Shown piece after piece: positions 6,146 through 33,700 of a stretch of DNA of 64,000 nucleotides. The stretch is taken from assembly GCF_028641065.1 (NCBI RefSeq), contig NC_073393.1, positions 20,212,001 to 20,276,000 of the forward strand. Direction: 5' to 3'. Made by a program: the position numbers and the translations under genes. The notes beneath the pieces are model-generated. The model ran no database searches. It was not told the DNA's origin and saw nothing but the letters and a program-made list of their open reading frames with translations. How positions within the stretch are numbered: the stretch's first letter is position 1; the number at the start of each line of letters is the position of its first letter. The DNA is from Leucoraja erinacea. Its lineage: Eukaryota.

Positions 6146-7728
6146 ACATAGAAACATGGAAACATAGAAAATAGTTGCAGGAGGAGGCCATTCGGCCCTT
6201 CGAGTCAGCACCGCCATTCATTGAGATCGTTGCTGATGAGCCCCAATCAATAACCCGTGCCTGCCTTCTCCCTGTATTCCTCTGTGGCAGGGAATTTCCA
6301 CAAATTCACAATTCTCTGGGTGAAAACGTTTTTTCTCACTGCAGTCTTAAATGGCCTTCTCTTTATTCTAAGACTGTGGCCCCTGGTTCTGGGCTCGCCC
6401 AACATTGGGAACATTTTCCCTGCATTTAGCTTGTCCAGTCCTTTTATAATTTTATAAGTTTCTATAAGATCCCCCCTCCCCCCCATCCTTCTAAACACCG
6501 GTGAACACAAGCCTAGTCTTTTCAATCTTTCCTCATATGACAGTCCCGGTCATCCCAGGGATCAACCTCGTGAACCTACGCTGCACTGCCTCAATCACAA
6601 GGATGTCCTTCCTCAATTTAGGAGACCAAAACTGTACACAATACTGCAGATGTGGTCCTACCAGAGACATATACAACTGCAGGAGAACCTCTTTACTCCT
6701 ATACTGATATCCTCTTGTTATGAAGGCCAACATTCCATTAGTTTTCTTCACTGCCTGCTGTACCTGCACGCCAACTTTCAGTGACTGGTGTACAAGGACA
6801 CCCAGGTCTCGCTGTAACTCCCCCTTACCTAACCTAACCTCATTGAGATAATAATCTGCCCCCTTGTTTTTGCCGCCAAAGCGGATAACCTCACATTTAT
6901 CTATATTATACGGCATCTGCCACGCATCTGCCCACTCACTCAACGTGTCCAGGTCACCCTGCAACCTCCTAACATCCTCTTCGCAGTTCACACTGCCACT
7001 CAGCTTTGTGCCATCCGCAAACTTGCTAGTGTTGCTCCTAATTCCTTCTTCCAAAACATTAATATATATGGTTAACAGTTGCAGCCCCAACACCGAGCCT
7101 TGCGGCACTCCACTCGCCACTGCCTGCCATTCTGAAAATGACCCGTTCACTCCTATTCTTTGCTTCCTGTCTGCTAACCAATTTTCTATCCACGCCAACA
7201 CTCGACCCCAATACCATATGCTCTAATTTTAGTCACCAGTCTCCCGTGCGGGACATTATCAAAGGCTTTCTGAACGTCTAAATACACTACATCCACTGGC
7301 TCCCCTTCATCCATTTTACTTGTCACTTTCTCCAAAAATTCCAGAAGATTAGTCAAGCATGACTTTCCTTTCATAAATCCATGCTGACTTGGACTAATCA
7401 TTTTACTGCCATCCAAATGCCCCATTATTACCTCTTTAATACCGAAGTCAGGCTAACTGGTCTGTAGTTACCCGTTTTCTCTCTCACTCCTTTCTTGAAA
7501 AGTAGGATAACATTAGCTATCCTCCAATCCACAGGAACGGATCCTGAATCTATTGAACATTGGAAAATGATCACCAATGCGTCCACAATTTCTAGAGCCA
7601 CCTCCCTGAGGACCCTGGGCTGCAGACCATCAGGTCCAGGGAATTTATCATCCTTCAGTCCCATTAGCCTACCCAATACTATTTCTCGCCTAATGAAAAA
7701 TTATTTCAGTTCCTCTACCCCCTTAGAT
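6146..7728 (-). mobile_element. CR1 LINE, RT domain, frameshifted
   Basis: ORFs 7428-7676, 7186-7425, 6533-7201 and 6247-6525 give PGPDG..NYRPVSLTS, QHGFMKGKSCLTNL, GVPQGSVLG and KFADGTKL. Absent from duplicate copy B. Confidence 0.92.
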
Positions 7729-10417: not shown

Positions 10418-13400
10418 AACCATATAACCATATAACCATATAACAATTACAGCACGGAAACAGGCCATCTCGACCCTGCTAATCCGTGCCGAACACATAA
10501 TCTCCCCTAGTCCCATATACCTGCGCTCAGACCATAACTCTCTATTCCCTTCCCATCCATATAACTATCCAATTTATTTTTAAATGATAAAAAACGAACC
10601 TGCCTCCACCACCTTCACTGGAAGCTCATTCCACACAGCTACCACTCTCTGAGTAAAGAAGTTCCCCCTCATGTTACCCCTAAACTTCAGTCCCTTAATT
10701 CTCATGTCATGTCCCCTCGTTTGAATCTTCCCTACTCTCAGTGGGAAAAGCTTATCCACGTCAACTCTGTCTATCCCTCTCATCATTTTAAAAACCTCTA
10801 TCAAGTCCCCCCTTAACCTTCTGCGCTCCAAAGAATAAAGCCCTAACTTGTTCAACCTTTCTCTGTAACTTAGTTGCTGAAACCCAGGCAACATTCTAGT
10901 AAATCTCTTCTGTACTCTCTCTATTTTGTTGACATCCTTCCTATAATTAGGCGTCTAAAATTGTACACCATACTCCAGAATTGGCCTCACCAATGCCTTG
11001 TACAATTTTAACATTACATCCCAACTTCTATACTCAATGCTCTGATTTATAAAGGCCAGCACACCAAAAGCTTTCTTTACCACCCTATCTACATGAGATT
11101 CCACTTTCAGGGAACTGTGCACAGTTATTGCCAGATCCCTCTGTTCACCTACATTCTTCAATTCCCTACCATTTACCATGTACGTCCTATTTTGATTTGT
11201 CCTGCCAAGATGTAGCACCTCACACTTATCAGCATTAAACTCCATCTGCCATCTTTCAGCCCACTCTTCCAACTGGCATAAATCTCTCTGTAGACTTTGA
11301 AACTCTACTTCATTACCCGCAACCCCACCTATCTTAGTATCATCTGCATACTTACTAATCCAATTTACCACACCATCATCCAGATCATTGATGTACATGA
11401 CAAACAACAGTGGACCCAACACAGATCCCTGTGGCACCCCACTCGTCACTGGCCTCCAACCTGACAAACAACCATCCACCATTACTCTCTGGCATCTCCC
11501 ATTCAGCCACTGTTGAATCCATCTTGCTACTCCACCATTAATACCCAACCATTGAACCTTCTTAACCAACCTTCCATGAGGAACCTTGTCAAAGGCCTTA
11601 CTGAAGTCCATATACACAACATCCACTGCGTTACCCTCATCAATTTCCCGTGTAACATCTTCAAAAAATTCAAGAAGATTAGTTAAACAAGACCTTCCAG
11701 GCACAAATCCATGTTGACTGTTCCTAATCAGACCCTGTTTATCCAGATGCTTATATATATTATCTCTAAGTATTCTTTCCATTAATTTGCCCACCACTGA
11801 CGTCAAACTAACAGGTCTATAATTGCTAGGTTTACTCTTAGACCCCTTTTTAAACAATGGAACAACATGCGCAGTACGCCAATCCTCCGGCACTATTCCC
11901 GTTTCTAATGACATTTGAAATATTTCTGCCATAGCCCCTGCTATTTCCACACTAACTTCCCTCAATGTCCTAGGGAATATCCTGTCCGGACCTGGAGACT
12001 TATCCACTTTTATATTTCTCAAAAGTGTCAGTACTTCCTCTTCTTTGATCCTCATAGTTTCCATAGCTACTCTACTTGTTTCCCTTACCTCACGTAATTC
12101 AATATCCTTCTCCTTGGTGAATACGAAGAAAAGAAACTGTTCAATATCTCCCCCATCTCTTTTGGCTCTGCGGATAGTTGTCCACTCTGACTCTCTAATG
12201 GACCAATTTTATCCCTCTTTATCCTTTTGCTATTAATATAGCGGTAGAAACCCTTCGGATTTACTTTTACCTTACTTGCCAAAGCAACCTCATATCTTCT
12301 TTTAGCTTTTCTAATTTCTTTCTTAAGATTCTTTTTACATTCTTTATACTCCTCAAGCACCTCATTTACTCCATGCTGCCTATAATTATTGTAGATCTCC
12401 CTCTTTTTCCGAACCAAGTGTCCAATTTCCCTTGAAAACCATGGCTCTTTACAATTTTTACGATTTCCTTTCAACAGGGACATAAAGATTCTGTACTCTT
12501 AAAATGTCACCTTTAAATGTACTCCATTTCTCTTCCACATCTTTCCCATAAAACAAACTGTCCCAATTTACTCCTTTTAAATCCTTTCGCATCTCCTCAA
12601 AGTTAGCCTTTCTCCAATCAAAAATCTCAACCCTAGGTCCAGTTTTGTCCCTCTCCATAATTATATTGAAACTAATGGTATTGTGATCACTGGACCCGAA
12701 CTGTTCCCCAACGCATACCTCTGCCACCTGACCCATCTCATTTCCTAACAGGAGGTCCAGTACCGCCCCTTCTCTAGTAGGTACTTCTATGTATTGTTGC
12801 AAAAAACTATCCTGCACACATTTTACAAACTCCAAACCATCCAGCCCATTTACAGAATGTGTTTCCCAGTCTATGTGTGGAAAATTGAAATCTCCCACAA
12901 TCACTACCTTGTGCTTACTACTAATATCTGCAATCTCCTTACATATTTGTTCTTCCAATTCTCGCTCCCCATTTAGCGGTCTATAATACACCCCTATAAG
13001 TGTTGCTACCCCTTTCCCATTTCTCAGTTCCACCCAAATAGCCTCCCTAGACGAGCCCTCTAATCTATCCTGCCAAAGCACTGCTGTGATATCTTCCCTG
13101 ATAAGCAATGCAACACCTCCACCTCTTGCCCCTCCAATTCTATCACACCTGAAGCAACGAAATCCTGGAATATTTAATTTCCAATCACAGCCCTCCTGCA
13201 ACCATGTTTCACTGATCGCCACAACATCATACTTCCAGGTGTCATAGAAACATAGAAACATCAAAATTAGGTGCAGGAGTAGGCCATTCGGCCCTTCGAG
13301 CCTGCACCGCCATTCAATATGATCATGGCTGATCATCCAACTCAGTATCCCGTACCTGCCTTCTCTCCATACCCCCTGATCCCCTTAGCCACAAGGGCCA

Positions 13401-14590
13401 CATCTAACTCCCTCTTAAATATAGCCAATGAACTGGCCCCAACTATCCCCTATGGCAGAGAGTTCCAGAGATTCCCCACTCTCTGTGTGAAAAAAGTTCT
13501 CCTCATCTCGGTTCTAAAGGATTTCCCCCTTATCCTTAAGCTGTGACCCCTTGTCCTGGACTTCCCCAACATCGGGAACAATCTTCCTGCATCTAGCCTG
13601 TCCAACCCCTTAAGAATGTTGTAAGTTTCTATTAAGATCCCCTCTCAATCTCCTAAATTCTAGACAGTATAAACCAAGTCTATCCAGTCTTTCTTCATAA
13701 GACAGTCCTGACATCCCAGGAATCAGTCTGGTGAACCTTCTCTGCACTCCCTCTATGGCAATAATGTCCTTCCTCAGATTTGGAGACCAAAACTGCACGC
13801 AATACTCCAGGTGTGGTCTCACCAAGACCCCGTACAACTGCAGTGGAACCTCCCTGCTCCTATACTCAAATCCTCTTGCTATGAAAGCCAACATACCATT
13901 TGCTTTCTTTACTGCCTGCTGCACCTGCATGCCTACCTTCAATGACTGGTGTACCATGACTCCCAGGTCTCGCTGTATCTCTCCCTTTCCCAATCGGCCA
14001 CCATTTAGATAATAATCTGCTTTCCCGTTTTTGCCACCAAAATGGATAACCTCACATTTATCCACATTATACTGCATCTGCCAAACATTTGCCCACTCAC
14101 CCAGCCTATCCAAGTCACATTGCAGTCTCCTAGCATCCTCCTCACAGCTAACACTGCCCCCCAGCTTAGTGTCATCCGCAAACTTGGAGATATTGCCTTC
14201 AATTCCCTCATCCAGATCATTAATATATATTGTAAATAGCTGGGGTCCCAGTACTGAGCCTTGCGGTACCCCCACTAGTCACTGCCTGCCATTGTGAAAA
14301 GGACCCGTTTACTCCTACTCTTTGCTTCCTGTTTGCCAGCCAGTTCTCTATCCACATTAATACTGAACCCCCAATGCCATGTGCTTTAATGTGTCATGTG
14401 TCAATCCAGGCTCTAAGTTCATCCACTTTTCTTACAATGCTCCTAGCATTAAAATACAAACATTTAAGAAACCCACCCTCTCTTATTCTCTGATTATTTT
14501 CTTTTTCTTCTCTCTCCCCTACATTTTGGGTCAGAGTGCTACCATTCTCTGCCCCCTGCTTCACACACTGACTGCTAGCTTTCCCAATTT
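10418..14590 (-). mobile_element. Near full-length CR1 ORF2 (APE endonuclease + RT), interrupted by a nested CR1 at 13243-14390
   Basis: The EN N-terminus LKCLYFNARSIVRKVDELRAWIDT (ORF 14394-14681) joins WKYDVVAISETWL...GDFNFP...SDHN (12458-13238). RT is in 10955-12064 (KYADDTK) and the C-terminus in 10580-10894. Tail (aaccatat)n. Only a few frameshifts. Confidence 0.93.
13243..14390 (-). mobile_element. CR1 LINE (same subfamily as 2014-2995), nested in the EN domain of another CR1
   Basis: ORF 13610-14275 is nearly identical to ORF 1973-2734. Flanked by gtgtca direct repeats (13239-13244; 14391-14396 and 14398-14403). Confidence 0.92.
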
Positions 14591-16462: not shown

Positions 16463-17319
16463 ATGAAGACAGCGCTCTGCGTCGTTGCCCTTGTAGGAGC
16501 CCTGGTGATCTGCAGTTTCCAGAATGTTGCAGCCGCCCCGGGTAAGATATCTTCCTTATTAGTATAGGTTGATGAGTACGGGTGTTAGAGGTAAAGGGGA
16601 GAAGGCAGGAAAATCGGATTAGGAGGGAGAGATGGAACAGCCATGATTGAATGGCGGGCTAGACAATGCATAGAATGGCCTAATTCTACTCTCCTGCCAA
16701 TGAACCGCGAGCAGCTCATTGCCGTTTACCTCCGACTGATGATATCATTGAATAGCTCTCGGTAGAATTTGGAGGGAGGGGTAGGGAAGAATACAACAGC
16801 ATCTGAGGGGGTGAGCAGGCTGGAAAATTGTATTGATGGGGGGGCTGAGATTGTTGGAGGAGGGGTTGGCCAGCTAGTGTAAAACACGGAGACCGCTACA
16901 GAGACGAGGGCACCAATGCCCTCCTTGCTGTGCATTTTCTATAAACGTGGGGCAGTACGGTAAACTGCGATGGAGAATGCTGGAAAATCCCTCAGTGTGT
17001 AACGTTGTCTCATCCTCCCTCTCCCCCAGTGGGATCGATAATCCCGGAATGCTGTGAGACGTTTAGGACCACTCCGATTCGTCACTGGAGGCTTAAAAGC
17101 TACGAGGCAACTCCTTGGTGCTCGACTGCCGCTGTCATGTAAGTATTTTAATGAGCTCCAAAGTGTGTTTGAATATGTGGTGATTGACTCTCAGGTAATC
17201 ACACCTGCTTGGTCTGCTTCAGATTCGTCAACCGGAGGAATATGAAGATTTGCACCAGAGCCGGAGAGAGATGGGTCAAAGCTGCAATGAAGTATCTGGA
17301 CAGGAAACACAAGAAGTGA
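16463..17319 (+). CDS. CC chemokine (CCL17/CCL22-cluster-like), paralog B, 94 aa; exons 16463-16541, 17030-17138, 17223-17319
   Basis: GT-AG introns and the same exon sizes as paralog A (79/109/97). Protein: MKTALCVVALVGALVICSFQNVAAAPVGSIIPECCETFRTTPIRHWRLKSYEATPWCSTAAVIFVNRRNMKICTRAGERWVKAAMKYLDRKHKK*. TTTAAAA 16391-16397, AATAAA 17579-17584. Confidence 0.93.
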
Positions 17320-21876: not shown

Positions 21877-23319
21877 TATTACTCTATCTGCGTGCGCCGA
21901 TTTCCTGCTGCATCCAAAGACGTGCTGGTTGGCAGGTTAATTGACCTCGGTAAATTTCCCCTTGTGTGCAGATGAGTGGTAGCACTTTGAGTTTAATCAG
22001 AGTGTCTCTCCGTATATACTGCCAAGGCTGAATAAACAAACTTGCTCGAGAAACTCGCCACTGCTCTACAAGATTTTCTTTGTGTAGAGTCCCGATGTGC
22101 GTCCCAATCGAGAAGGCGACAGGGCCCCACGTAAATGCTAACATCGTGGTACACGTCAAACAATTCCATCCAACAGAGGGTTACCTGGAAAAGCTGTCAG
22201 AGGAAATTGTGATGGCAGATACAATTACAATATTGAAAAGGCATTTGGACAGATATATGGATAGGAAATATGGGACTAACATGGGCGAATGGAAGTAGTG
22301 TAGACAGGCCATCACATACATACAGAGCTGTATGATTCTATAATCCTGGGGACAAGGCCGCGGAATATATTCGCAGTTAAAGGAAACTGTTTATTTTCTT
22401 CTTGCATCTCGTTTCACCGCCAATGTTTATCCCCAGGGAAGGAAGACAACATTCTTCTCGGGTCGCTCAGTCTGGGCGCTGATCGCGAAGCCACGCTGCG
22501 TTGGAGAGGGGGTTCCGGGATTTAGGTCCAGCAATAATGAAGGGTCACATCAGGATGGTGAGCGACGACATGGATGTGATGTCTCCTGCTCATTCCTTCA
22601 GCCAGAAGAGTTTGTGCTTTTGGCAGATGATTGCAGTATTTTCCTCATCTTGCTCTAAATTAGTTTACCTCATATCCTCAGAGTGTGACTCATGAACCTG
22701 AACGTTCTGTTGGGTCTAACCTGTAACGTAATAGCATCCGTTTACGTACAAGTAGCGTTCAATGTTAACTTGGAGAGGCATTGATAGGAAAATTAACAGG
22801 AATACTGACACTGCATTTCGTTGTCTCTGTACTGTACACTGCACAATGATAATAACGTTTGAATCTGAATCCGAACAAGGTCTTTCTGTTCTTCAGCTTG
22901 CTCGAAAGACATTACAATAATTATGTGAACTGGACGGGTGCCAGCCACTGGCAACTGCATCAATGCCAACTGTTGCTGAGTCTTGCGTTTTCTCTCCGCT
23001 GTCCCATGCAGTGCCAGGCTTGCTGACCAACACAAGGACCATCTCCACGGTAACGCTGAGCACGGGGGGGCGCTCTGCCCGACATGCACCAATGGCAGCT
23101 CGGCTTGATAGTTCGCCCCAAACCCCAGCGAGGTAGCCTTGTTGTGTTGACGTGGCCAAGATTGGGAATCCAATAAATCAGCTCTGTGGGACTTGGCGCA
23201 GAAATCCTGTCATTCCATTGTAACTTGGCGTGAAAGTTTCCTCATTAATTAATCAGCAGGCGTGCATTCCTGGCACAGGAACGAAGAAAATGCCATGTCA
23301 GCCTTTCTCGTTCCCAAAC

Positions 23320-23361
23320 CTCTCTCTCTTTCTCTCTCTCTCTCTCTGCTTCAGTATAAAT
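23320..23361 (+). promoter_or_regulatory. (CT)n tract and TATA box of chemokine-like gene C
   Basis: (ct)n 23320-23347 and TATAAAT 23355-23361, about 77 nt upstream of ATG 23438. Confidence 0.65.
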
Positions 23362-23437
23362 AGTGGACTGCTTCTATGTTTCTATTTACACCGCTTTCCG
23401 TGCATCTGCCCATCCCGGGTGTGGTTGGGAGCTAGAG

Positions 23438-25978
23438 ATGAAGGGTCACCTTGTCCTCGGACTCCTTCTCTTGGAACTGGCCCACACCCGGCTCGCTGGT
23501 TCTGCAGGTAAGGTCAGAGTTGTCGTCAGGCGAGAGCGATCACATTCTCACAGTTACATCGCGGCGTTTCAAATCTACATTCCGAAGGTCAGCTTGGCAT
23601 GGTGATCTCAGAGAGAGATTGTGGTCCGGGTTAACATCCAGTGATTCCGCCAGGGCGAGGTAAATCCCAGGATCCCCGTCTCTATGCAACGTTACCCGAA
23701 TTAACAACTTGAAAATGCCCGGGCTACCTACCCCTGATCAACGGTACTTCAGATAGGGAGTCCCTGGAATCGCCTGGGCAACTGCTCCTGACCAATGTGA
23801 TGTGCATCGTGTGCCGGGTAGGAATGACGCCGCAGACATCGTGGCTGGAAACATGTACGGAGGATCTCGTCAGAAACAGCGTTTTCTAGACCGGGAGCTT
23901 CGTATAGGGAACGTTCCCGAAAACAGTCCTCCCCTACCCCCATTAAGCAGAGAGGGTAGGATTAATTTCCCAGCCAAATCCGGCAGAGAGGCGGGTAGTG
24001 CGTCTCGCCCTGTTACAGGCGCTCGCCTCTGGAATAATGGAGGAGCTGATGGCTTGTGGGGATAATGGGTTGCAGCCGGGGTCCATCTACAGCAGTGGGT
24101 GTAGTTATGGCCCGTGCAGGTTGAATTAACCCTGCAATATGTCACTTGAGAGGGTGAGATAATTCTGGAATCACCGGCTCACTCTCTTAAAAACTATAAT
24201 TATCCAGTCATATGGTTGCGGCAAAAATAGACACAGAACAATTTTCCTTTATCCTTTTCAAAGATTTCACCATGCAGTCGACCATTGGTGCAGACCGAGT
24301 GTACGTACGGGACTGGCTCTCCACTGCTGGGGTATGAGGTCCAATGAGATTGAATTGAGATTGAGGGTTTAGATGGGGAGTGTCTGAAGTTTCTGGATGT
24401 AGGATGAAAGAGAATCGACGTTGAGAAAACGAAAGAGTCCCGAGAGGAAGTGGGGAGCCCTTTGGGGTAAGAGCATCGTGGGGTCTCAGAGAGGCAGATA
24501 CAAGTCGGCTGAGGGGGTAGGGAATTAATTTCCACATTAGGTCTCAGGGAATGCACAGCCACTTGACCACAGCAAGTCACGAAACAGGTGGCTGAGCCGA
24601 GATGATCCTTTAAATTAAAGTCATAAATTCGTGTGATAGAAGCATAATTAGACCATTCGGCCATCGTCTCCTCCGCCATTTAATCGTGGCTAATCTATCT
24701 CTCCCTCCGAACCCCATTTTCTGCCTTCTCCCTATAACCCCTGACACATACCCCGAGGTCGGTGGCCTGTGGTGCCACACTGCTTCGTTGTTCAACATTG
24801 AACCGGGGTGTTAAAGGGACATCCAAATGAACGTCAGGCTGCTTTTCTCCACTGCCCGAGATACTGGGAATATCCAGCCCTTTCCGCGGCCAGAATGTGG
24901 CGTATTGACGTAGAATGGAGGCACGCTGGCCAATAGAATTACGAACATGAATGGCCTGCTCTTATGTCAGTCAGAAAGCGGGGTTGTCTCCGGACAGCTG
25001 AACACCGGTGCAAGACTACAGAGAGTTTACCAATGGCATCTGGCAGTGGATGGAATGTTGATGCGTTTTTTATTTGCACACAGCGGTTCCAACCGTCCCT
25101 TTCCTGTCAGAGGAAAGATCCATTGATGGGCCGAAGGTGGAACTGAAATGCATCGCTCCCAGTGTACTGTAAGTTGACTGCAATTTGCCATTCTAATGTG
25201 CAAGCACTCGGACGCAAGCACTGCTCACCGCGGATGTACCTGCTGTCCTTCACACCCTAATATCAGCCAAGGGGGCATCAGACAACACATCCCATTAGTC
25301 AAAAATACCACACTGCAGGTGCCGGGAAAATAAAGAGCAAATGCTGCCAGCACTCAACAGGTTAGGCAGGGTCTCTGGGGAAAGACACACGTGGACACAC
25401 ATAGCTCAGGCCTATGCTCTTTCATAATGGTGATATTTGGGAAGCAGGGCACTCGTTCCGCCAGACGATCCGTTATATCCCAACTCCCATTCCTGTCACC
25501 ATGCTTGTACACCGATCCCTCCTGTTTTCCAGACCACTATGGCATTGAAGGAGAACAATAAACTGCCCAGGAAATGTTCACGTCACAGAGATAACATGAA
25601 TTGGGTCAATAGTGGGGTGTCAAAGAGTTGTTGACGACAGTTGAGGGCACCGCCGTTCAATATGATCATGGCTGATCATCCAACTCAGTATCCCGTACCT
25701 GCCTTCTCTCCATACCCCCTGAACCCCCTAGCCACAAGGGCCACATCTAACTCCCTCTTAAATATAGCCAATGAACTGTAAAAGAGTGTCAAAGAGTTGT
25801 TGACGACAGTTGAGGGGAGAATGTAGCCGCGTGTACCTGGACCGTCACCTCACACCAACCTCGTTATACTCTGCACAGGTTCAAAACGAAGGGCGGCGTG
25901 GAGATCTGCGTGGAACCTTCTGAGACATGGATGCAGAAAGCGCTAGATGCGCTGAAGAAACGCTTTCAGCAAGGCTAG
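23438..25978 (+). CDS. Atypical chemokine-fold secreted protein (gene C); exons 23438-23507, [optional 24278-24331], 25084-25168, 25879-25978; 84 aa or 102 aa
   Basis: Exon 1 is a signal peptide MKGHLVLGLLLLELAHTRLAGSA with donor CAG|GTAAGG (phase 1). Exon 25084-25168 ends ...KCIAPSVL|GTAAGT (phase 2, equivalent to CxxPAVI|F). The last exon FKTKGGVEICVEPSETWMQKALDALKKRFQQG* has the canonical C-X15-C and W at C4+7. TATA upstream, AATAAA 26259-26264. No adjacent CC/CXC pair is found. Confidence 0.75.
25648..25785 (-). mobile_element. Internal CR1 3' fragment flanked by a 31-bp direct duplication
   Basis: gtgtcaaagagttgttgacgacagttgaggg at 25617-25647 and 25786-25816. The insert matches the CR1 3' UTR (cf. 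13305-13436). Confidence 0.8.
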
Positions 25979-26354
25979 TACGAAGAAGCCGCCAGAGCCC
26001 TGGGACAGAGGCGACTCGTCAAATACAACATGTGTCCTGGGCAGTATCAGCCGACTATAATCGCCGTCTCTGCTTGCAATGATCATTCGCTTCAGGCCAT
26101 GTAACCGGCGGCCCTGGGCATATGTCCTTTCGGTAGTGTACTCTGTCCTTGCTCAGTCTACCTCCCTCTTGGTTCTGGCGATGCTCGGAGTACTTGCTTC
26201 CGCAGTCGAAGAAGAGAGCCAGATCTATACACCTAAACATCAGTATAATAATGTAGATAATAAATTCAGCCATGCACCTCTCTGTGGCTTGGTATTAAAC
26301 GAGTACGTTTCTCATTGCACTATCGCTAACACAGGGAATCCATGATCGTCGCCG

Positions 26355-27252
26355 TCACTAATCTTCTGGATTTTTTTGAGGATGCAACAAGTAGAATGGA
26401 TAAGAGAGAGCCCGTGTATATGGTGTAGCTGGACTCTAAAAGCTCTTGACAAGGTCCCACACAAGAGATTAGTGCGCAAAATTAGAGCACTTGGTATTGG
26501 GGATAGGGTATTGACATGGAGGGAGAATTGGTTGGCAGACAGGAAGCAAAGAGTAGGAATTAACGGATCATTTTCAGAGTAGTAGGCAGTGACTTTAGGG
26601 GTGCCGCATGGCTCGGTGCAGGAACCTCAGTTATTTACAATATCTATTAACAATTTAGATGAGGGAATTAAAGGGGACATCTCCAAGTTTGAGGATAACA
26701 CAAAGCTGGGTGGCTGTGTGAGGTGCGATGAGGATGCTATGACGCTGCAGTGTGACTTGCATAGCAGATGCAGTATAATGTGGATAAATGTAAGGTTATA
26801 CATTTTGGTGGCAAGAACAGGAAGGTAGATTATTATCTGAATGGTGTCAGATTAGGAAAAGGGCAGTTGCAACGAGACCTGGGTGCGCTTGTACATCTGT
26901 CACTGAAAGTAAGCAAGCAGGCACAGCAGGCAGTGAGGAAAGCTGATGGCATGTTGGCCTTCATTTCAAGAGAATTTGAGTTTAGGAGGTCCAACTGCAG
27001 TTATACAGGGCCCTGGTGAGACCGCACCTGGGGTATTACGTGCAATTTTGGTTTCCTAATGTGAGGAAGGATATTATTGCTATTGAGGGAGCGCAGCGTA
27101 GGTTCATCAGATTAATTCCCGATTGGCGGGACTGACATATGATGAAAAAATAGGTTGATTAGGCTTGTATTCACTGGAATTTAGAGTGATGAGAGGGGAT
27201 CTTATAGAAACATATAAAACTCTTAAAGAATTGGACAGGCTAGATGCAGGAA
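26355..27252 (+). mobile_element. CR1 LINE RT region, decayed
   Basis: ORF fragments KALDKVPHKRL, GVPHGSV..INNLDEG..KFEDNTKL and QYNVDKCKVIHFG. Confidence 0.88.
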
Positions 27253-27756: not shown

Positions 27757-30700
27757 TCAGGCATCGCTCAGAGTCTTGTTCGTCAGCAGGATCTGTTCAC
27801 CAGGCTTGAAGGCGGGCATCCCCATGTATGGACAACTGGCACAGCGGAACGCATCGCCCAGATAGCACTGCAAAGTCAAGCAGCAACTTTAGAGCTCTTC
27901 ACACTATTACACAGAGAAAATCAGGCCCAATAAAATAAGAGTAGCAAGGCCATGTTGAGAAAGGGCCAGCAATATAACAATACAGGGAATGCTCACCCAT
28001 TAGCAGAGGTAAGAGGTCCTTGCAAATAACAGGCAGTATCCAGTGCACAGAGATGATAAATAGAGAGCCAAGAACTGATCCATGGAGCTCTCCACCAGTT
28101 ATAATTTGGACAAGGTGGAGGGCCCTAACCCAACTGTTTATTTCATCCCCGTCTTCTACATGATAAATCACCCACCTTTCCCCCGTAGTGTCAGCTTGTA
28201 TTTTGTACACTGAATGGAATATCTGTTGAAAATTATCTATATTAACACCTCCCCCTCTATCAACGCAGTTTGTTTTATCCTACAAGAACAATTTCCCTTA
28301 AAAACTCCAATATGATTTTTATTCCTTCTCTCCTAGTTCCTGCCACATCTATTTACAGGATATTACATGAAAGCCCCCAGTGTTATAAGGTTTAATGGGA
28401 CTCATGCAGAGCAAGACTAGGTCTCTGCATGCATCATTGATTCTTGTTTCTTACTGCCTTGTTGGGAAGTATTGGACACCAGATCAAGCTCCGATATTCA
28501 TTTGGGCAATCACACTTTGAGGAAACTTACACTTCCACAAGACGATTTGACCTGCACGGACTTCACATCTTTGGGTCCTTTCACCACCAACTCTTCTGCG
28601 AGACCACATGTGCTGAAAAAGAAAGACCAAGTCATACATAAATACAAGCACCTTGCTTTAACTAATCACAACAGCAGTGAGACCGTGAGAGTTGATGGGT
28701 GGACCTGGAGGGAGGAGAGCGCCAAGAGTGATGGGGGGGGGGGGGGGGGGGGGGGGGGGTGCCAAAAACGAAGGAAACCAGCAAAGTGGAGGAAGAGGCC
28801 TGCTACCACGTGCAATGGCAGGCACTAGTCAAAACTGTTCGGTGTACTGCCTAGGTGAGGTTTGCTGTATGAATTTACCGAGTTGTATGAAAAACAAAAC
28901 ATTTCACTGTACCTCGGTATATATGACAATAAAGTATAATTGTGTAGTGCATGGTTCTCAAAAGGATGCACGGTCCAGTGTTTTGAGAGGCACCTTTTAT
29001 TATGTTCCTCCCGGTTGTAGGGAAGACCAAACAAGAGAAAGATGGCACCCAAACCCCTGCCTTTAAACCCTCTAGCTAAGAGCCGCCTCCGGACTGAACC
29101 ACTCCCGTGCCAAGGGGTTCAACAGTATGATGGCATGACCCTTGGGAGCCGCCACAATTGACTCATTAAATCATTGGAGAGGTCAACTGGGAGCGCCCCT
29201 CGTGGAGGGCAAAAGCAATGACAGCGCCCCTTGGGAGGGTTTTGGAGGTGGTGGGAAGGGCATGTTGATTTGGGGAGGTGGACACCTGAAATTGGAGCGT
29301 CAAAGCAAAAGGTGTTGTTTGCAGAGTGGGTACAGAAGGAGGAAGATCTGAGTAGCTGGCATCACAGACACAAGGTGACTTGAAGTAGATGATTCACGTG
29401 ATCACCACAGTACTGAAGGGCCTGAGTGCGAGCAGGACACTGACCAGTTTTTACAGGCACGCTTTTTCTTTTTGCTGTCTCCACAATTCATGATCCGGAG
29501 CGAGGCTGGGTCAGGTTTCTTTAAATCATTTTCGTCCAGCAACTCGTCAGAATCTATGAAATCCTGCGAAAGAACAGGAAGGGAAAATCTGTTACTGAAT
29601 GGACTGAATTCCTTCCCATTGTTTTCTTGGATGTGCACCCGACACCTCCAACCCAACAGATTCCATCATGCAGATATTACAGCTCAGAGCAGCATCTCTC
29701 TCTACGTATTCATCTCTTTAATAATAAAAGGTGTGAGAAAGATGTGCCAGTGCGGAGTAGAGCAATGGAAGAGCACAGCTTTCACTGGTAGCTTTCGATG
29801 TTCCCTCTCCATGATGTTCCCTTGGAGAACTGCAAGCTAAAGGGTTTTCATCATTCTCAGTGCGTGGGAACCTCGGCCTTGAGCAGCATTTGATCAGCAG
29901 CAAAATATCACAACAATCCAGTTTTAATTGTCATATGTAGATTAACACGATGTCAACGTTACAATGAAATGTGTTTGACAAGACAACGGGTCACCTCAAC
30001 AATAATATAACAAGGATAAGATAAAAATGACATTTGTAAGATAAAAAGACAATAATAAAATAATCAACATATATGATGTGAAATGGCCTGATGGTAAAAA
30101 CTGTTCTTAAGTCTGGTGGTACGTGCAACCATGCTCCTATGTCGTCTGCCTGACGGTAACAAGAATAGTCTGTGTGCTGGGTGGCTGTGGTCCTTGATGA
30201 TACTGTGTGCCTTCCGCAAGCACCGCTGGTGGAAAATGTCCTGAATGGCTGGGAGACAGTTGCCAGTGATGTGCTGTGCCGCCTTCACCACTCTCTGTAG
30301 TGATTTGCGACTATGGGCAGAACAGTTCCCGTACCAGACTGTGATGCAGCCCGTCAGCAGACTCTCGATGGTGCAACTGTAGAACTTTGTGAGGATGCTG
30401 CCGTTCGTGTCAAACTTCCTCAGTCTTCTCAGGAAAAAGAGCCGCTGGCGGACTTTCTTAGTTATTGTGTCCATGTGCAGTGTCCAGGAGAGGTCCTCAG
30501 TGATGTGCACGCAGAGGAACTTGAAGCTGCTGACCCTTTCAATCTCAGCATCACCGATATGGATGGGGAGGTGTCCACTCCCCTGCTGTCTTCTGTAGTC
30601 CACGATCATCTCTTTAGTTTTGCGAACATTGAGAGGTTATTTGCCTGGCACCAGCTGTTTAGTGCCCCTACCTTCTCCCTATAGGCCGTCTCATTGTTGT

Positions 30701-33700
30701 CTGTGATGAGGCCCAGGAAGGTTGTGTCTTCAGCAAACTTTAGGATGATGTTTGAGCTGTGCTTAGCAGTACAGTCGTGCGTGAACAGGGAGTACAGGAG
30801 AGGACTGAGCACACAGCCCTGTGGTGTGCCTTTGTTGAAGATCAGTGAGGAACAGGTGTGGCTGCCAATTCTCATCACCTGTGGCCTGCCAGTCAGGAAG
30901 TCGAATATCCAGCTGCAGATGGAGGTCTCCAGTCCAAGATCAAGGAGCTTGGGGACGAGTTTTGAGGGAATGATAGTGTTGAATGCCAAGCTGTAGTCAA
31001 TGAAGAGCATTCTCACATATGTATTCCCTTTGTCCAGGTGAGTGAGCACAGTGTGAGTTGCCATGGCAATGGCATCGTCCATGGCCCTGTTTGGTATATA
31101 CGCAAACTGAAGAGGGTCCAAGGTGTCAGCAGGGAGAGAGCAGCAGATGTGAGTTTTGACTAGCCGCTCGAAGCACTTCATGATGACTGATGACAGTGCG
31201 ACAGAACAGTAGTCATTTAGACAGGTTTCTTTGGAACAGGAATGATGGTGGATGTTTTGAAGGGGGTGGGAACCACAGACTGACTCAGGGTGAGGTTGAA
31301 GACAGTGGTGAATCTGGCAGTTGACCAGCGCCGCCCTGAGAGCGCGCCCTGGAATACCATCCGGCCCTGGAGCTTTGCGGTAGTTGACCTTTTTGAAGGT
31401 CTGCCTCACGTCTGCCGTTTGTAGGGTCAGTGAGGTAGTCCCCCTGCACACCTGTGGGCTCACGGTGGGCGCTGTGTTGTCTGTATCCAACCGGGCGTAA
31501 AAGGTGTTAAGCTCGTCCGGGAGCGATGCGGTCGGCTGAACAGTGCTCCTATTTTTCCCTTTGTAGTCTGTGATGCAGCATAATCCACTCCACCTTTGTC
31601 TGGGGTCAGAACTGTAGTAGTTAGATTCCACTTTGTTTCTGTAGTCTCTCTTGGCTTTCGTGATGGACTTCCGGAGGTCATATCTGACTGCTTTGTAGGC
31701 GTCGGGGTCCCCTGAGTTGAAGGCAGTGATCCGTGCTTTGAGTTTAGCGTGAATTTCCCGTCCGACCCAGGGTTTCCGATTTGGGTAAGTGCGGATGGTG
31801 GCTTCTGGAGCAAATCATCGATGCACCTACTTATGTAGCCTAAGACAGAGGCTTGAAATAAATTCAGAAAATGTCTGGAACAAACATTTGATGAGGCAGC
31901 TTCCAACAGAAGCAAGAAAAGAAATTGCAGGAGCCCAAGCTGAGATATACAAATCATCATAAGACATGGGTCTAATGCTGGCTAATGTTGTGCCTCTATT
32001 TAAGAAGGGCTGCAAAGATATGCCTGTGAACTAAAGACCACTAAGTCAAACATCTATAGTAGGTATATGGAATGAACTTCCAGAGGAGGTAGTTGAGGCA
32101 GGTACTATCACAACATTTAAAAAACATTTAGGCAGCTACATGAATAGGAGAGTTTTAGAAGGACATGGGCCAAACGCAGGCAGGTGGGACTAGTGCAGAT
32201 GGTGCATGTTGGTCAGTGTGGGCAAGTTGGGCCGAACAGCCTGTTTCCACGCTGTATGACTGAGAGATCCCACCACAAACAGGGGAAGGTAATGGTGACA
32301 AGAGGAATCCCACCACTAACACAGAAAGGTTGCAGGTACAGAGGGATCGCACCACATTAGACAGGGTAAGGTAATGAGGAATTAAGGATCTTACCGCACC
32401 AACTATGGAAAGGTAGTGGGGACTGAGGGATCTCAACACAAACAGAGTAAGGTAGTGTGGAGGGAGGGATATCGCCACATTGAACAGGCAAAGGTAGTGA
32501 GGATTGAGGGATCTCACCACATCGTCGTCATTCATATCGGTAGCTGACAAGGTCCAAGCCTTTGCTGCATTGGGGTCCAACTGTGGCTTCTCTGGAATAG
32601 TAAATTCCATCAATTAGTCCAACTGCCTGCACCCGCTCCTTAACAGCCTCCTATCTTCCACCCACCCCCCGTCACCTGATAGTATTGCAGCCGGCCACAT
32701 TACCTTGTACATTACACTACATTAAATGGAAAGACGATCACTTTCCTGCTGCTCACCGGTGAATACACCCATTCCATCATCTTCAAACCTTGGGAGCTGC
32801 CTGTGAAGTGATCTCTATTAACAATTTTACATATAACTGGATTGTAGCATCTTTTATCGCTACCAAAAACGAATTTGTTTGACTGGTGGATTTACTATCT
32901 TGGTTACATACCAGAAACTCCATTGTGGTTAGCTTATAGCATAAAAACATGACAAGGAAAACCCATGAAGAACAGTGGAAACAGGGACATTGTATAGACC
33001 GGGAGCTGCATTCTGGGGGCAAATCTGTGCTTTACCTGCCCTGGGACATTTAAGTGTGGTGGAGACTTCATTTTACATCATTCTAATATTGTGGATTAAA
33101 AAGAGATTCTCATCATGCTTATAGTTGCAAAGTGAATTTCCCCTTTGACTGCTTACCAACACTTACCTGGTGCCTGGTTGTTTTTTTTAACAAACGACAG
33201 TTTGAGTTGAGACGAGGATCCGACTTCAAAGTCTGGTTTCTTCGCCTTTATTCCGTGCTTCACCAAGTTGCCACTTGGGGAGCCGATGCCATGGTCTATG
33301 GAACTTAGTTGATCAGCAGTTAAAAGTTCTTTTCCCATCTGTGACAAAGAGTCAGTGGTACAATCACTGCTGATGTGTGTGCAAAGTGGAGCTGGAACAA
33401 ACCACAGCAATGCAGGAACAATGAAGCACAGGGACCCCAATGCCACTGCCATTGGTTTGTTGACTACGTACATTTATGGAACAGAGCAACTGAGCGGCAA
33501 GTTTCTTGCGCAAGCACGAGTGGCAAACACCTGCCTCGGGTTACAGCGAAAGAAATGCAGCTGGGCTAAGGCTCCAGTGTCGGGGGAAATAAAGTCGGCA
33601 AGTGCGAATCTTTAAGGTTAGAGGAGACATTTTAAACATTTGAAAAAGAGGATAACAAAAGGAAAGGGCCTGTTACACTATCAGAAATGTAACCTGAGCA

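Follow-up and report, generated by a model that had tools for sequence, protein, structure and literature searches.

One published account recognises five classes of chemokine, CXC, CC, XC, CX3C, and CX, and describes the last of these in zebrafish as a lineage-specific group in which one N-terminal cysteine was lost and the third and fourth cysteines (C3 and C4) were retained (PMC3568907). For XCL1, fold switching goes with the loss of one conserved disulfide, as far as the consulted part of a second account describes it (PMC11751857), and in a third the immunoglobulin J chain is presented as a co-opted CXCL chemokine, its authors expecting further cases of "transitioning" chemokines (PMC10801876). 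Here, we describe a gene of the skate Leucoraja erinacea (RefSeq assembly GCF_028641065.1) whose coding sequence runs from 23438 to 25978 on the forward strand of a 64,000-nucleotide (nt) window of contig NC_073393.1 (positions 20,212,001–20,276,000; all coordinates below are positions in this window). Its predicted mature product and those of its orthologues in sharks and rays keep only the equivalents of C3 and C4, a two-cysteine pattern that fits none of the five classes as listed in the first of these accounts.

The locus is a real, transcribed, three-exon gene related to chemokines, and we hold this with high confidence. To positions 22800–26400 we aligned data from two studies (X1 and X2), a raw oligo-dT RNA run (X12), and DNA from a related organism (X8); among the runs available, four small ones from 2019 had no recorded library type and contained 0.07–0.17 of the sampled words, approximately an exon-only share. 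X1 contributed a single contig of 649 nt at depth 16.4, covering 23388–23504, 25081–25168, and 25879–26301, and X2 a single contig of 517 nt at depth 74.3, covering 25081–25168 and 25879–26284, plus a further 23 letters beyond its first joint, toward exon 1. Both join 23504 to 25081 (GT..AG; a +3 shift of the cut gives 23507|25084) and 25168 to 25879 (GT..AG). Depth over unique intron sequence was zero in X1 and X2, which thus behave as transcript assemblies. Splicing therefore takes place exactly at the sites that a preliminary description of this locus had predicted from the sequence, and the 84-amino-acid (aa), three-exon model proposed there matches both contigs as well as RefSeq protein XP_055504735.1 (P0012; Leucoraja erinacea, "C-C motif chemokine 4-like"). 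Residues 1–23, 25–51, and 53–84 of P0012 are exactly the three exon translations, and the split codons G|CG and CT|G supply residues 24 and 52. At position 25112, X1 reads T for G (Glu33 to Asp, exon 2), and X2 and the DNA of a related organism, C, which has diverged by a few per cent, read G; this difference is probably an allele.

The three exons encode, in order, a hydrophobic leader, a 27-residue middle piece with a single, terminal cysteine, and a 32-residue end piece with the second cysteine. The first coding segment starts with the ATG at 23438 and comprises 70 nt (23 codons and one further nt, hence phase 1) before a GTAAGG donor. Exon 2, bounded by an acceptor ending in CACAG and a GTAAGT donor, encodes a region equivalent to the N-loop and strand beta1 and ends with Cys46, the C3 equivalent, with no CC motif; in a search of the window, its frame was matched by a profile of the family (A2) at E 7.5e-8. 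Exon 3, again preceded by CACAG, encodes Cys62 (the C4 equivalent), Trp69, and the C-terminal helix before the TAG stop at 25976–25978. Its proline and tryptophan lie three and seven residues after its cysteine, and the cysteines of exons 2 and 3 form a C-X15-C spacing. The preliminary description had placed the TATA box, the ATG, the exon boundaries, the stop, the AATAAA, and the spacings of C-X15-C and of the tryptophan at C4+7 correctly throughout.

As judged from profile comparisons, significant homology to chemokines is limited to the C-terminal half of the protein. The exon-3 peptide alone scored 21.9 bits (E 2.1e-4) against the Pfam family PF00048 (IL8; cut-off 21.3 bits), and the peptides of exons 1 and 2 gave no Pfam match. 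The same cut-off was passed by all six full-length orthologues tested (26.9–33.6 bits), with matched profile positions extending only from 26 or 28 to 58 or 59 of 60, so that the chemokine relationship first proposed from the sequence is borne out by this profile for the end piece and for the full-length proteins. Searched against the sequences of the PDB, the family profile returned 113 entries at E ≤ 1, of which the best 60 were all chemokines or chemokine fusions: CCL18 ranked first (4mhe_A, E 1.2e-9), and next came CCL2, an XCL1 ancestor (7jh1), CCL3, CCL7, and CCL4. In these alignments, the two family cysteines match C3 and C4 in CCL18 and CCL2 (Cys36 and Cys52 of CCL2). The alignment to CCL18 is ungapped (profile positions 26–78 to chain positions 15–67) and places the CC motif at family positions 22–23, where the signal peptide ends; when aligned to P0023, a CC paralogue from Mustelus, the family shows a single 10-residue gap, over GTVTIECCEN.

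These alignments also set the family apart from each described cysteine pattern. The two adjacent N-terminal cysteines that define the CC subfamily are absent from the mature region of all 12 orthologues described below, and C1 and C2, which the four-cysteine arrangement with C1–C3 and C2–C4 disulfides requires, are both missing. The first family cysteine aligns to C3 and not to C2, in contrast to the XC pattern of C2 and C4, and the predicted mature orthologues have two cysteines rather than the three of the CX pattern. Gene structure and location are those of a chemokine: three exons, introns in phases 1 and 2, a putative signal peptide in exon 1, and a position within a chemokine cluster. 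We also considered, as a possible CC motif, a "C*C" just 5′ of the exon-2 acceptor; it lies 28 residues from C3, includes an internal stop, and was dismissed as a chance occurrence.

Next, we delimited the group to which the gene belongs. When the exon-3 peptide was searched exhaustively with phmmer, 1.84 billion representative proteins yielded 11 matches at E ≤ 0.001. Four of these were short (83–128 aa) and 75–100% identical to the query, and the other seven were longer, most with several CC-chemokine-like repeats. The top match was XP_032892381.1, "C-C motif chemokine 4-like" of Amblyraja radiata, with P0012 in the same cluster. Profile searches with family alignments recovered 12 proteins at E 1e-25 to 1e-42, followed by a wide gap. 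The resulting ortholog group, with the cluster mate included, spans 12 species, namely three batoids (Leucoraja, Amblyraja, and Pristis) and nine sharks (Heptranchias, Pristiophorus, Heterodontus, Hemiscyllium, Stegostoma, Rhincodon, Cetorhinus, Mustelus, and Scyliorhinus). Searches that used strict E-values or shared 5-residue words recovered no holocephalan or bony-vertebrate orthologue, which does not establish absence from these groups.

Open reading frames (ORFs) of 77–84 aa are intact in all 12 species, and the mature proteins predicted by cutting at the putative signal-peptide site all contain exactly two cysteines, with isoelectric points (pI) of 4.61–8.04. The preliminary description had noted the lack of any CC, CXC, or CX3C motif, with only C3 and C4 equivalents present, for the skate gene; this now extends to 12 of 12 elasmobranch orthologues. 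Their alignment contains 22 invariant columns, including C46, C62, P65, W69, Q71-K72-A73-L74, L77-K78-K79, and F81. Conservation is uneven along the protein, with a mean pairwise identity of 0.75 at residues 46–84 vs 0.50 at residues 24–45, and batoid–shark identities of 0.68 and 0.31 for the same two segments. In the maximum-likelihood tree, batoids (support 99/97) and orectolobiforms (100/98) were each recovered, and the remaining topology fits accepted relationships, as expected from the vertical descent of one gene. In Heterodontus francisci, two isoforms (X1/X2; P0013 and P0004) have alternative 5′ ends that swap the signal peptide for a cysteine-rich leader, with a CC about 40 residues before C3, a spacing unlike that of chemokines; this leader most likely reflects an alternative first exon whose ORF is spurious.

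Overall, we consider it reasonably probable that these observations are best explained by a single account, joining the identity of the gene to a functional shift of its product. In this account, the gene is functional, lies beside the tandem CC genes of this locus, and descends from a CC-type chemokine gene. Its exon 2 is 24 nt shorter at the 5′ end than that of its CC neighbors, which leaves a product lacking both the N-terminal segment before the cysteines and the CC motif itself. The predicted mature protein of about 61 aa begins approximately where C2 would be, and strong constraint across elasmobranchs maintains Cys46, an LFKT-GG hairpin, Cys62, Pro65, Trp69, and, at the C-terminus, an amphipathic helix that ends in LKK-F. 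This helix has a basic tip. We infer that the product is secreted and, since there is no C1 or C2 with which they could pair, that Cys46 and Cys62 bond with each other or between chains.

In classical chemokines, the N-terminal segment triggers the receptor, as is known from N-terminally truncated CC chemokines. The absence of this segment, together with an acidic-to-neutral charge, suggests that the protein would no longer be a classical chemokine-receptor agonist. A role as a modulator or antagonist, as the ligand of a scavenger-type receptor, or as a protein co-opted via its C-terminal helix would be more likely, and we give such a shift a little under an even chance. The family may tentatively be regarded as a sixth structural class, having C3 and C4 only and no N-terminal trigger, and at least as old as the ancestor of sharks and rays. 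Such a chemokine "in transition", in the sense put forward for the J chain, may with neither N-terminal disulfide be non-canonical in structure or switch folds, as XCL1 does once one disulfide is lost, and may act via its nearly invariant C-terminal helix and tail; we give this proposal clearly less than an even chance. GPR15L is reported to act through its C-terminus and not its N-terminus.

The protein may instead still be a classical chemoattractant, adopting the chemokine fold without the two N-terminal disulfides and activating a G protein-coupled receptor (GPCR) via its short conserved N-terminus, in which case it would represent a sixth cysteine class with an ordinary function. Membership in Pfam IL8, a position inside a CC chemokine cluster, and long-term conservation, including an AIQSNP..PEE motif in sharks, are all in keeping with this, as are the available descriptions of XCL1 functioning with one disulfide (PMC11751857) and of zebrafish CX chemokines functioning with three cysteines (PMC3568907). 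Yet the whole segment before the cysteines is missing, no disulfide tethers the N-loop to the core, the pI lies at 4.6–8.0 in all 12 species, and batoids and sharks share only 31% identity in the N-terminal mature part vs 68% in the C-terminal part. We thus regard a conserved classical function as unlikely, although well short of implausible.

Several observations weigh against a non-classical, C3/C4-only chemokine derivative and have to be set beside it. Secretion is predicted by eye from the hydrophobic N-terminus. CCL3 and CCL4 are classical CC chemokines and are nevertheless acidic, and the shark N-terminus (AIQSNP..PEE) is fairly conserved and might still engage a receptor. In the approximately 5% of run X12 that was read, almost no reads fell on the exons. 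Structure prediction with AlphaFold2 (AF2) was confident only for residues 41–84, with residues 19–38 below 50 in predicted local distance difference test (pLDDT) and no beta1 strand predicted. Foldseek returned no match at E ≤ 0.001, even if its top rows were chemokines; VIA-align Z-scores reached at most 3.0 for chemokines; and in an unbiased structure search PH-domain fragments scored higher (Z 3.3) than XCL1 (Z 3.0).

The AF2 model itself, built on the 12-sequence alignment, had a mean pLDDT of 69 and contained two beta strands (residues 51–54 and 60–63) and a helix (68–83) at pLDDT 83–92. As a control, the canonical CC paralogue P0023 was modelled from a similarly shallow alignment and came out worse (pLDDT 50, residues 1–58 below 50), so that the low confidence in the N-terminal half of the family cannot be read as disorder. 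We also set aside structure comparison as evidence for the fold, as it cannot separate a chemokine from any hairpin-plus-helix. The AF2 models give no evidence for or against a full chemokine fold, and it is the sequence comparisons that point to this fold, for the beta2–beta3–helix half and not for the N-terminal half.

A transcribed pseudogene, or a decaying CC chemokine copy that lost its CC motif by chance, would account for an exon 2 that is 24 nt shorter than those of the neighboring genes and gives no Pfam match when searched alone, and for the stop in frame upstream of the exon-2 acceptor. However, ORFs are intact in all 12 batoid and shark species with 22 invariant columns, gene and species trees agree, the RNA is spliced at canonical sites, and a 25-nt deletion just after exon 2 in organism C appears to keep the GTAAGT donor. 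The preliminary description had considered that orthologues might carry a normal CC exon, and none of the predicted proteins does, with no CC in the mature region of any of the 12. Being transcribed, and conserved in the whole set of 12, the gene is not an assembly error, nor is it a pseudogene in decay, and we judge the pseudogene reading very unlikely.

Finally, the preliminary description had offered a second model, in which a 54-nt exon within intron 1 would give a 102-aa, four-cysteine chemokine with the pattern C-X11-C-X23-C-X15-C, at least as a minor isoform. The candidate exon is present as described, flanked by AG and GT, preceded by a pyrimidine tract, and reading VDHWCRPSVRTGLALHCW in phase 1 with the frame kept, but it is absent from both transcript contigs, the bin 24252–24372 has zero depth in X1, X2, and X12, none of the 12 orthologues has a matching insertion at the exon 1/2 junction, and a search of the rest of the window with the exon peptide gave nothing convincing (best E 0.008). 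We therefore reject this model, although a rare isoform, which we consider very improbable, could have escaped notice, as contigs drop rare variants and the sole raw-read run has no coverage of the gene.

The features of the locus are collected in Table 1.

Table 1 Features of the two-cysteine gene and of the surrounding window
Feature	Coordinates	Strand	Details and basis
TATA box	23355–23362	+	TATAAATA, contains TATAAA; sequence
Exon 1	23388–23507	+	5′ untranslated region (UTR) from at least 23388, then coding sequence (CDS) 23438–23507; X1 contig
Intron 1	23508–25083	+	GT..AG, 1576 nt; same joint in X1 and X2
Candidate 54-nt exon, not used	24278–24331	+	Splice-like flanks; sequence, RNA depth, orthologues
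Exon 2	25084–25168	+	85 nt; X1 and X2 contig pieces 25081–25168
Intron 2	25169–25878	+	GT..AG, 710 nt; joint 25168 to 25879 in X1 and X2
Exon 3	25879–26301	+	CDS 25879–25978 and 3′ UTR; pieces 25879–26301 (X1) and 25879–26284 (X2)
Poly(A) signal	26259–26264	+	AATAAA; sequence, contigs end 20–37 nt downstream
CC chemokine gene A	569 to ~1350	+	Three exons, phases 1/2, ATG at 569
CC chemokine gene B	16463 to ~17316	+	Three exons, phases 1/2, ATG at 16463
LINE (long interspersed nuclear element) fragments	1973–2734, 6533–7201, 10955–13336, 13610–14275, 30064–31631, and others	both	

The TATA box lies about 30 nt 5′ of position 23388, the first aligned base of the X1 contig; as this contig has 21 more, unaligned letters at its 5′ end, the exact transcript start is not fixed. 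Among the differences listed between the window and organism C, none falls within 23145–23526, which includes the promoter, the 5′ UTR, and exon 1, vs about 3% in the flanks, and this segment may be a conserved regulatory block. A motif scan of 22900–23440 found no consensus for nuclear factor kappa B (NF-kB), the interferon-stimulated response element (ISRE), or the gamma-activated sequence (GAS), which is weak evidence. Intron 1 contains repeat-derived sequence at approximately 24615–24750, with very high repeat depth in bins 24615–24856 in all four runs. In intron 2, at 25622–25791, a fragment resembling a short interspersed nuclear element (SINE; ~25647–25778) sits between direct repeats of about 29 nt (~25620–25648 and ~25781–25810), with repeat depth and loose ends at 25647 and 25778. 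The organism-C DNA contig runs from 25621 directly to 25792 without this insertion, which is accordingly an insertion or duplication specific to the lineage of the window.

Both CC chemokine genes precede the two-cysteine gene on its own strand, by 6 and 22 kb. They are near-identical, about 15.9 kb apart, and share the same signal peptide and an intron 2 of about 80–90 nt. As the preliminary description had observed, they have the same architecture as the two-cysteine gene, with a longer, CC-bearing exon 2 (109 nt vs 85) that encodes ...IIPECCETF.... They are most similar to P0023 of Mustelus asterias, "C-C motif chemokine 5-like". Searches of the window for further paralogues, by tblastn with the exon peptides and by regular expressions, gave only noise beyond these two genes, and no non-chemokine anchor gene was found in the window, so that the correspondence to the position of mammalian CCL17 suggested in the preliminary description is a putative one. 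Many ORF fragments of LINE reverse transcriptase and endonuclease, in either orientation, take up most of the sequence that separates and follows the chemokine genes.

A further indication of linkage comes from Mustelus asterias. Protein P0022 (RefSeq "eotaxin-like isoform X2") starts with the first 20 residues of the family member P0017, from the signal-peptide exon of the two-cysteine gene, and continues with CC-type exons 2 and 3 like those of genes A and B; a homologue search with P0022 returned three proteins only. By joining both gene types, P0022 suggests that the two-cysteine and CC genes are adjacent in this shark as well. It represents either real alternative or read-through splicing between neighbors or a gene-model artefact, and gene order may differ between species, since the skate CC genes lie upstream.

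RefSeq already includes models of the gene, with CC-chemokine-like names, and its existence is not new. No description of an elasmobranch-wide two-cysteine group was found in the literature searched, including by five accessions, subscription journals and supplements lying outside this search; a group of this breadth without an N-terminal cysteine seems to be undescribed. Chemokine classification, and much of the understanding of chemokines, rests on the N-terminal cysteine motif and on the receptor-activating N-terminal segment. The present family retains half a chemokine under strong constraint across elasmobranchs and discards exactly these two features. It therefore offers a natural test of what the core can do by itself, in terms of folding, cysteine pairing, and the binding of receptors, scavenger receptors, glycosaminoglycans, or other partners. 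In practical terms, labels assigned automatically, such as "C-C motif chemokine 4-like" or "18-like", conceal the lack of a C-C motif in this group, and counts of CC chemokine repertoires in sharks and rays should list the two-cysteine group separately.

Among known systems, CC chemokines are the closest, with human CCL18 and then CCL2, CCL3, CCL7, and CCL4 ranking highest by profile, and the genes at 569 and 16463 being nearest in the locus. The family shares with them three exons with phases 1/2, the exon-1 signal peptide, the cluster location, and, within the protein, C3-X15-C4, the LF-T-GG hairpin, C-x-P, the tryptophan at C4+7, and the C-terminal helix. It differs from them in the lack of the CC motif and of the residues that precede it, in an exon 2 of 85 rather than 109 nt, in having two cysteines instead of four, and in being acidic to neutral instead of basic.

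The XC chemokine XCL1 (lymphotactin) likewise has only two cysteines, and so at most one disulfide, and 7jh1 (the XCL1 ancestor) and 1j8i (XCL1) are among the best matches by sequence and structure. However, XCL1 keeps C2 and C4, an N-terminal segment, and an N-terminus tethered to the core, whereas in the elasmobranch family C3 and C4 are the ones retained and the N-terminal cysteines are gone altogether. Zebrafish CX chemokines, as far as the cited account describes them, offer a parallel as a lineage-specific group in which N-terminal cysteine loss was accompanied by retention of C3 and C4 (PMC3568907); the family described here lacks both N-terminal cysteines, and its hosts are elasmobranchs.

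The J chain, as presented in the consulted part of its source, is likewise a duplicate from a chemokine cluster that kept the gene structure and the beta-strand core while its disulfide pattern and charge were altered (PMC10801876). It derives, however, from four-exon CXCL genes, acquired cysteines and an extended C-terminus, and its function is known, whereas the elasmobranch family derives from CC-type genes, lost cysteines, and has only putative roles. Should the product prove to act as a natural antagonist or to have been co-opted, it would provide a second case, after the J chain, of a chemokine duplicate that switched roles early in the history of jawed-vertebrate immunity.

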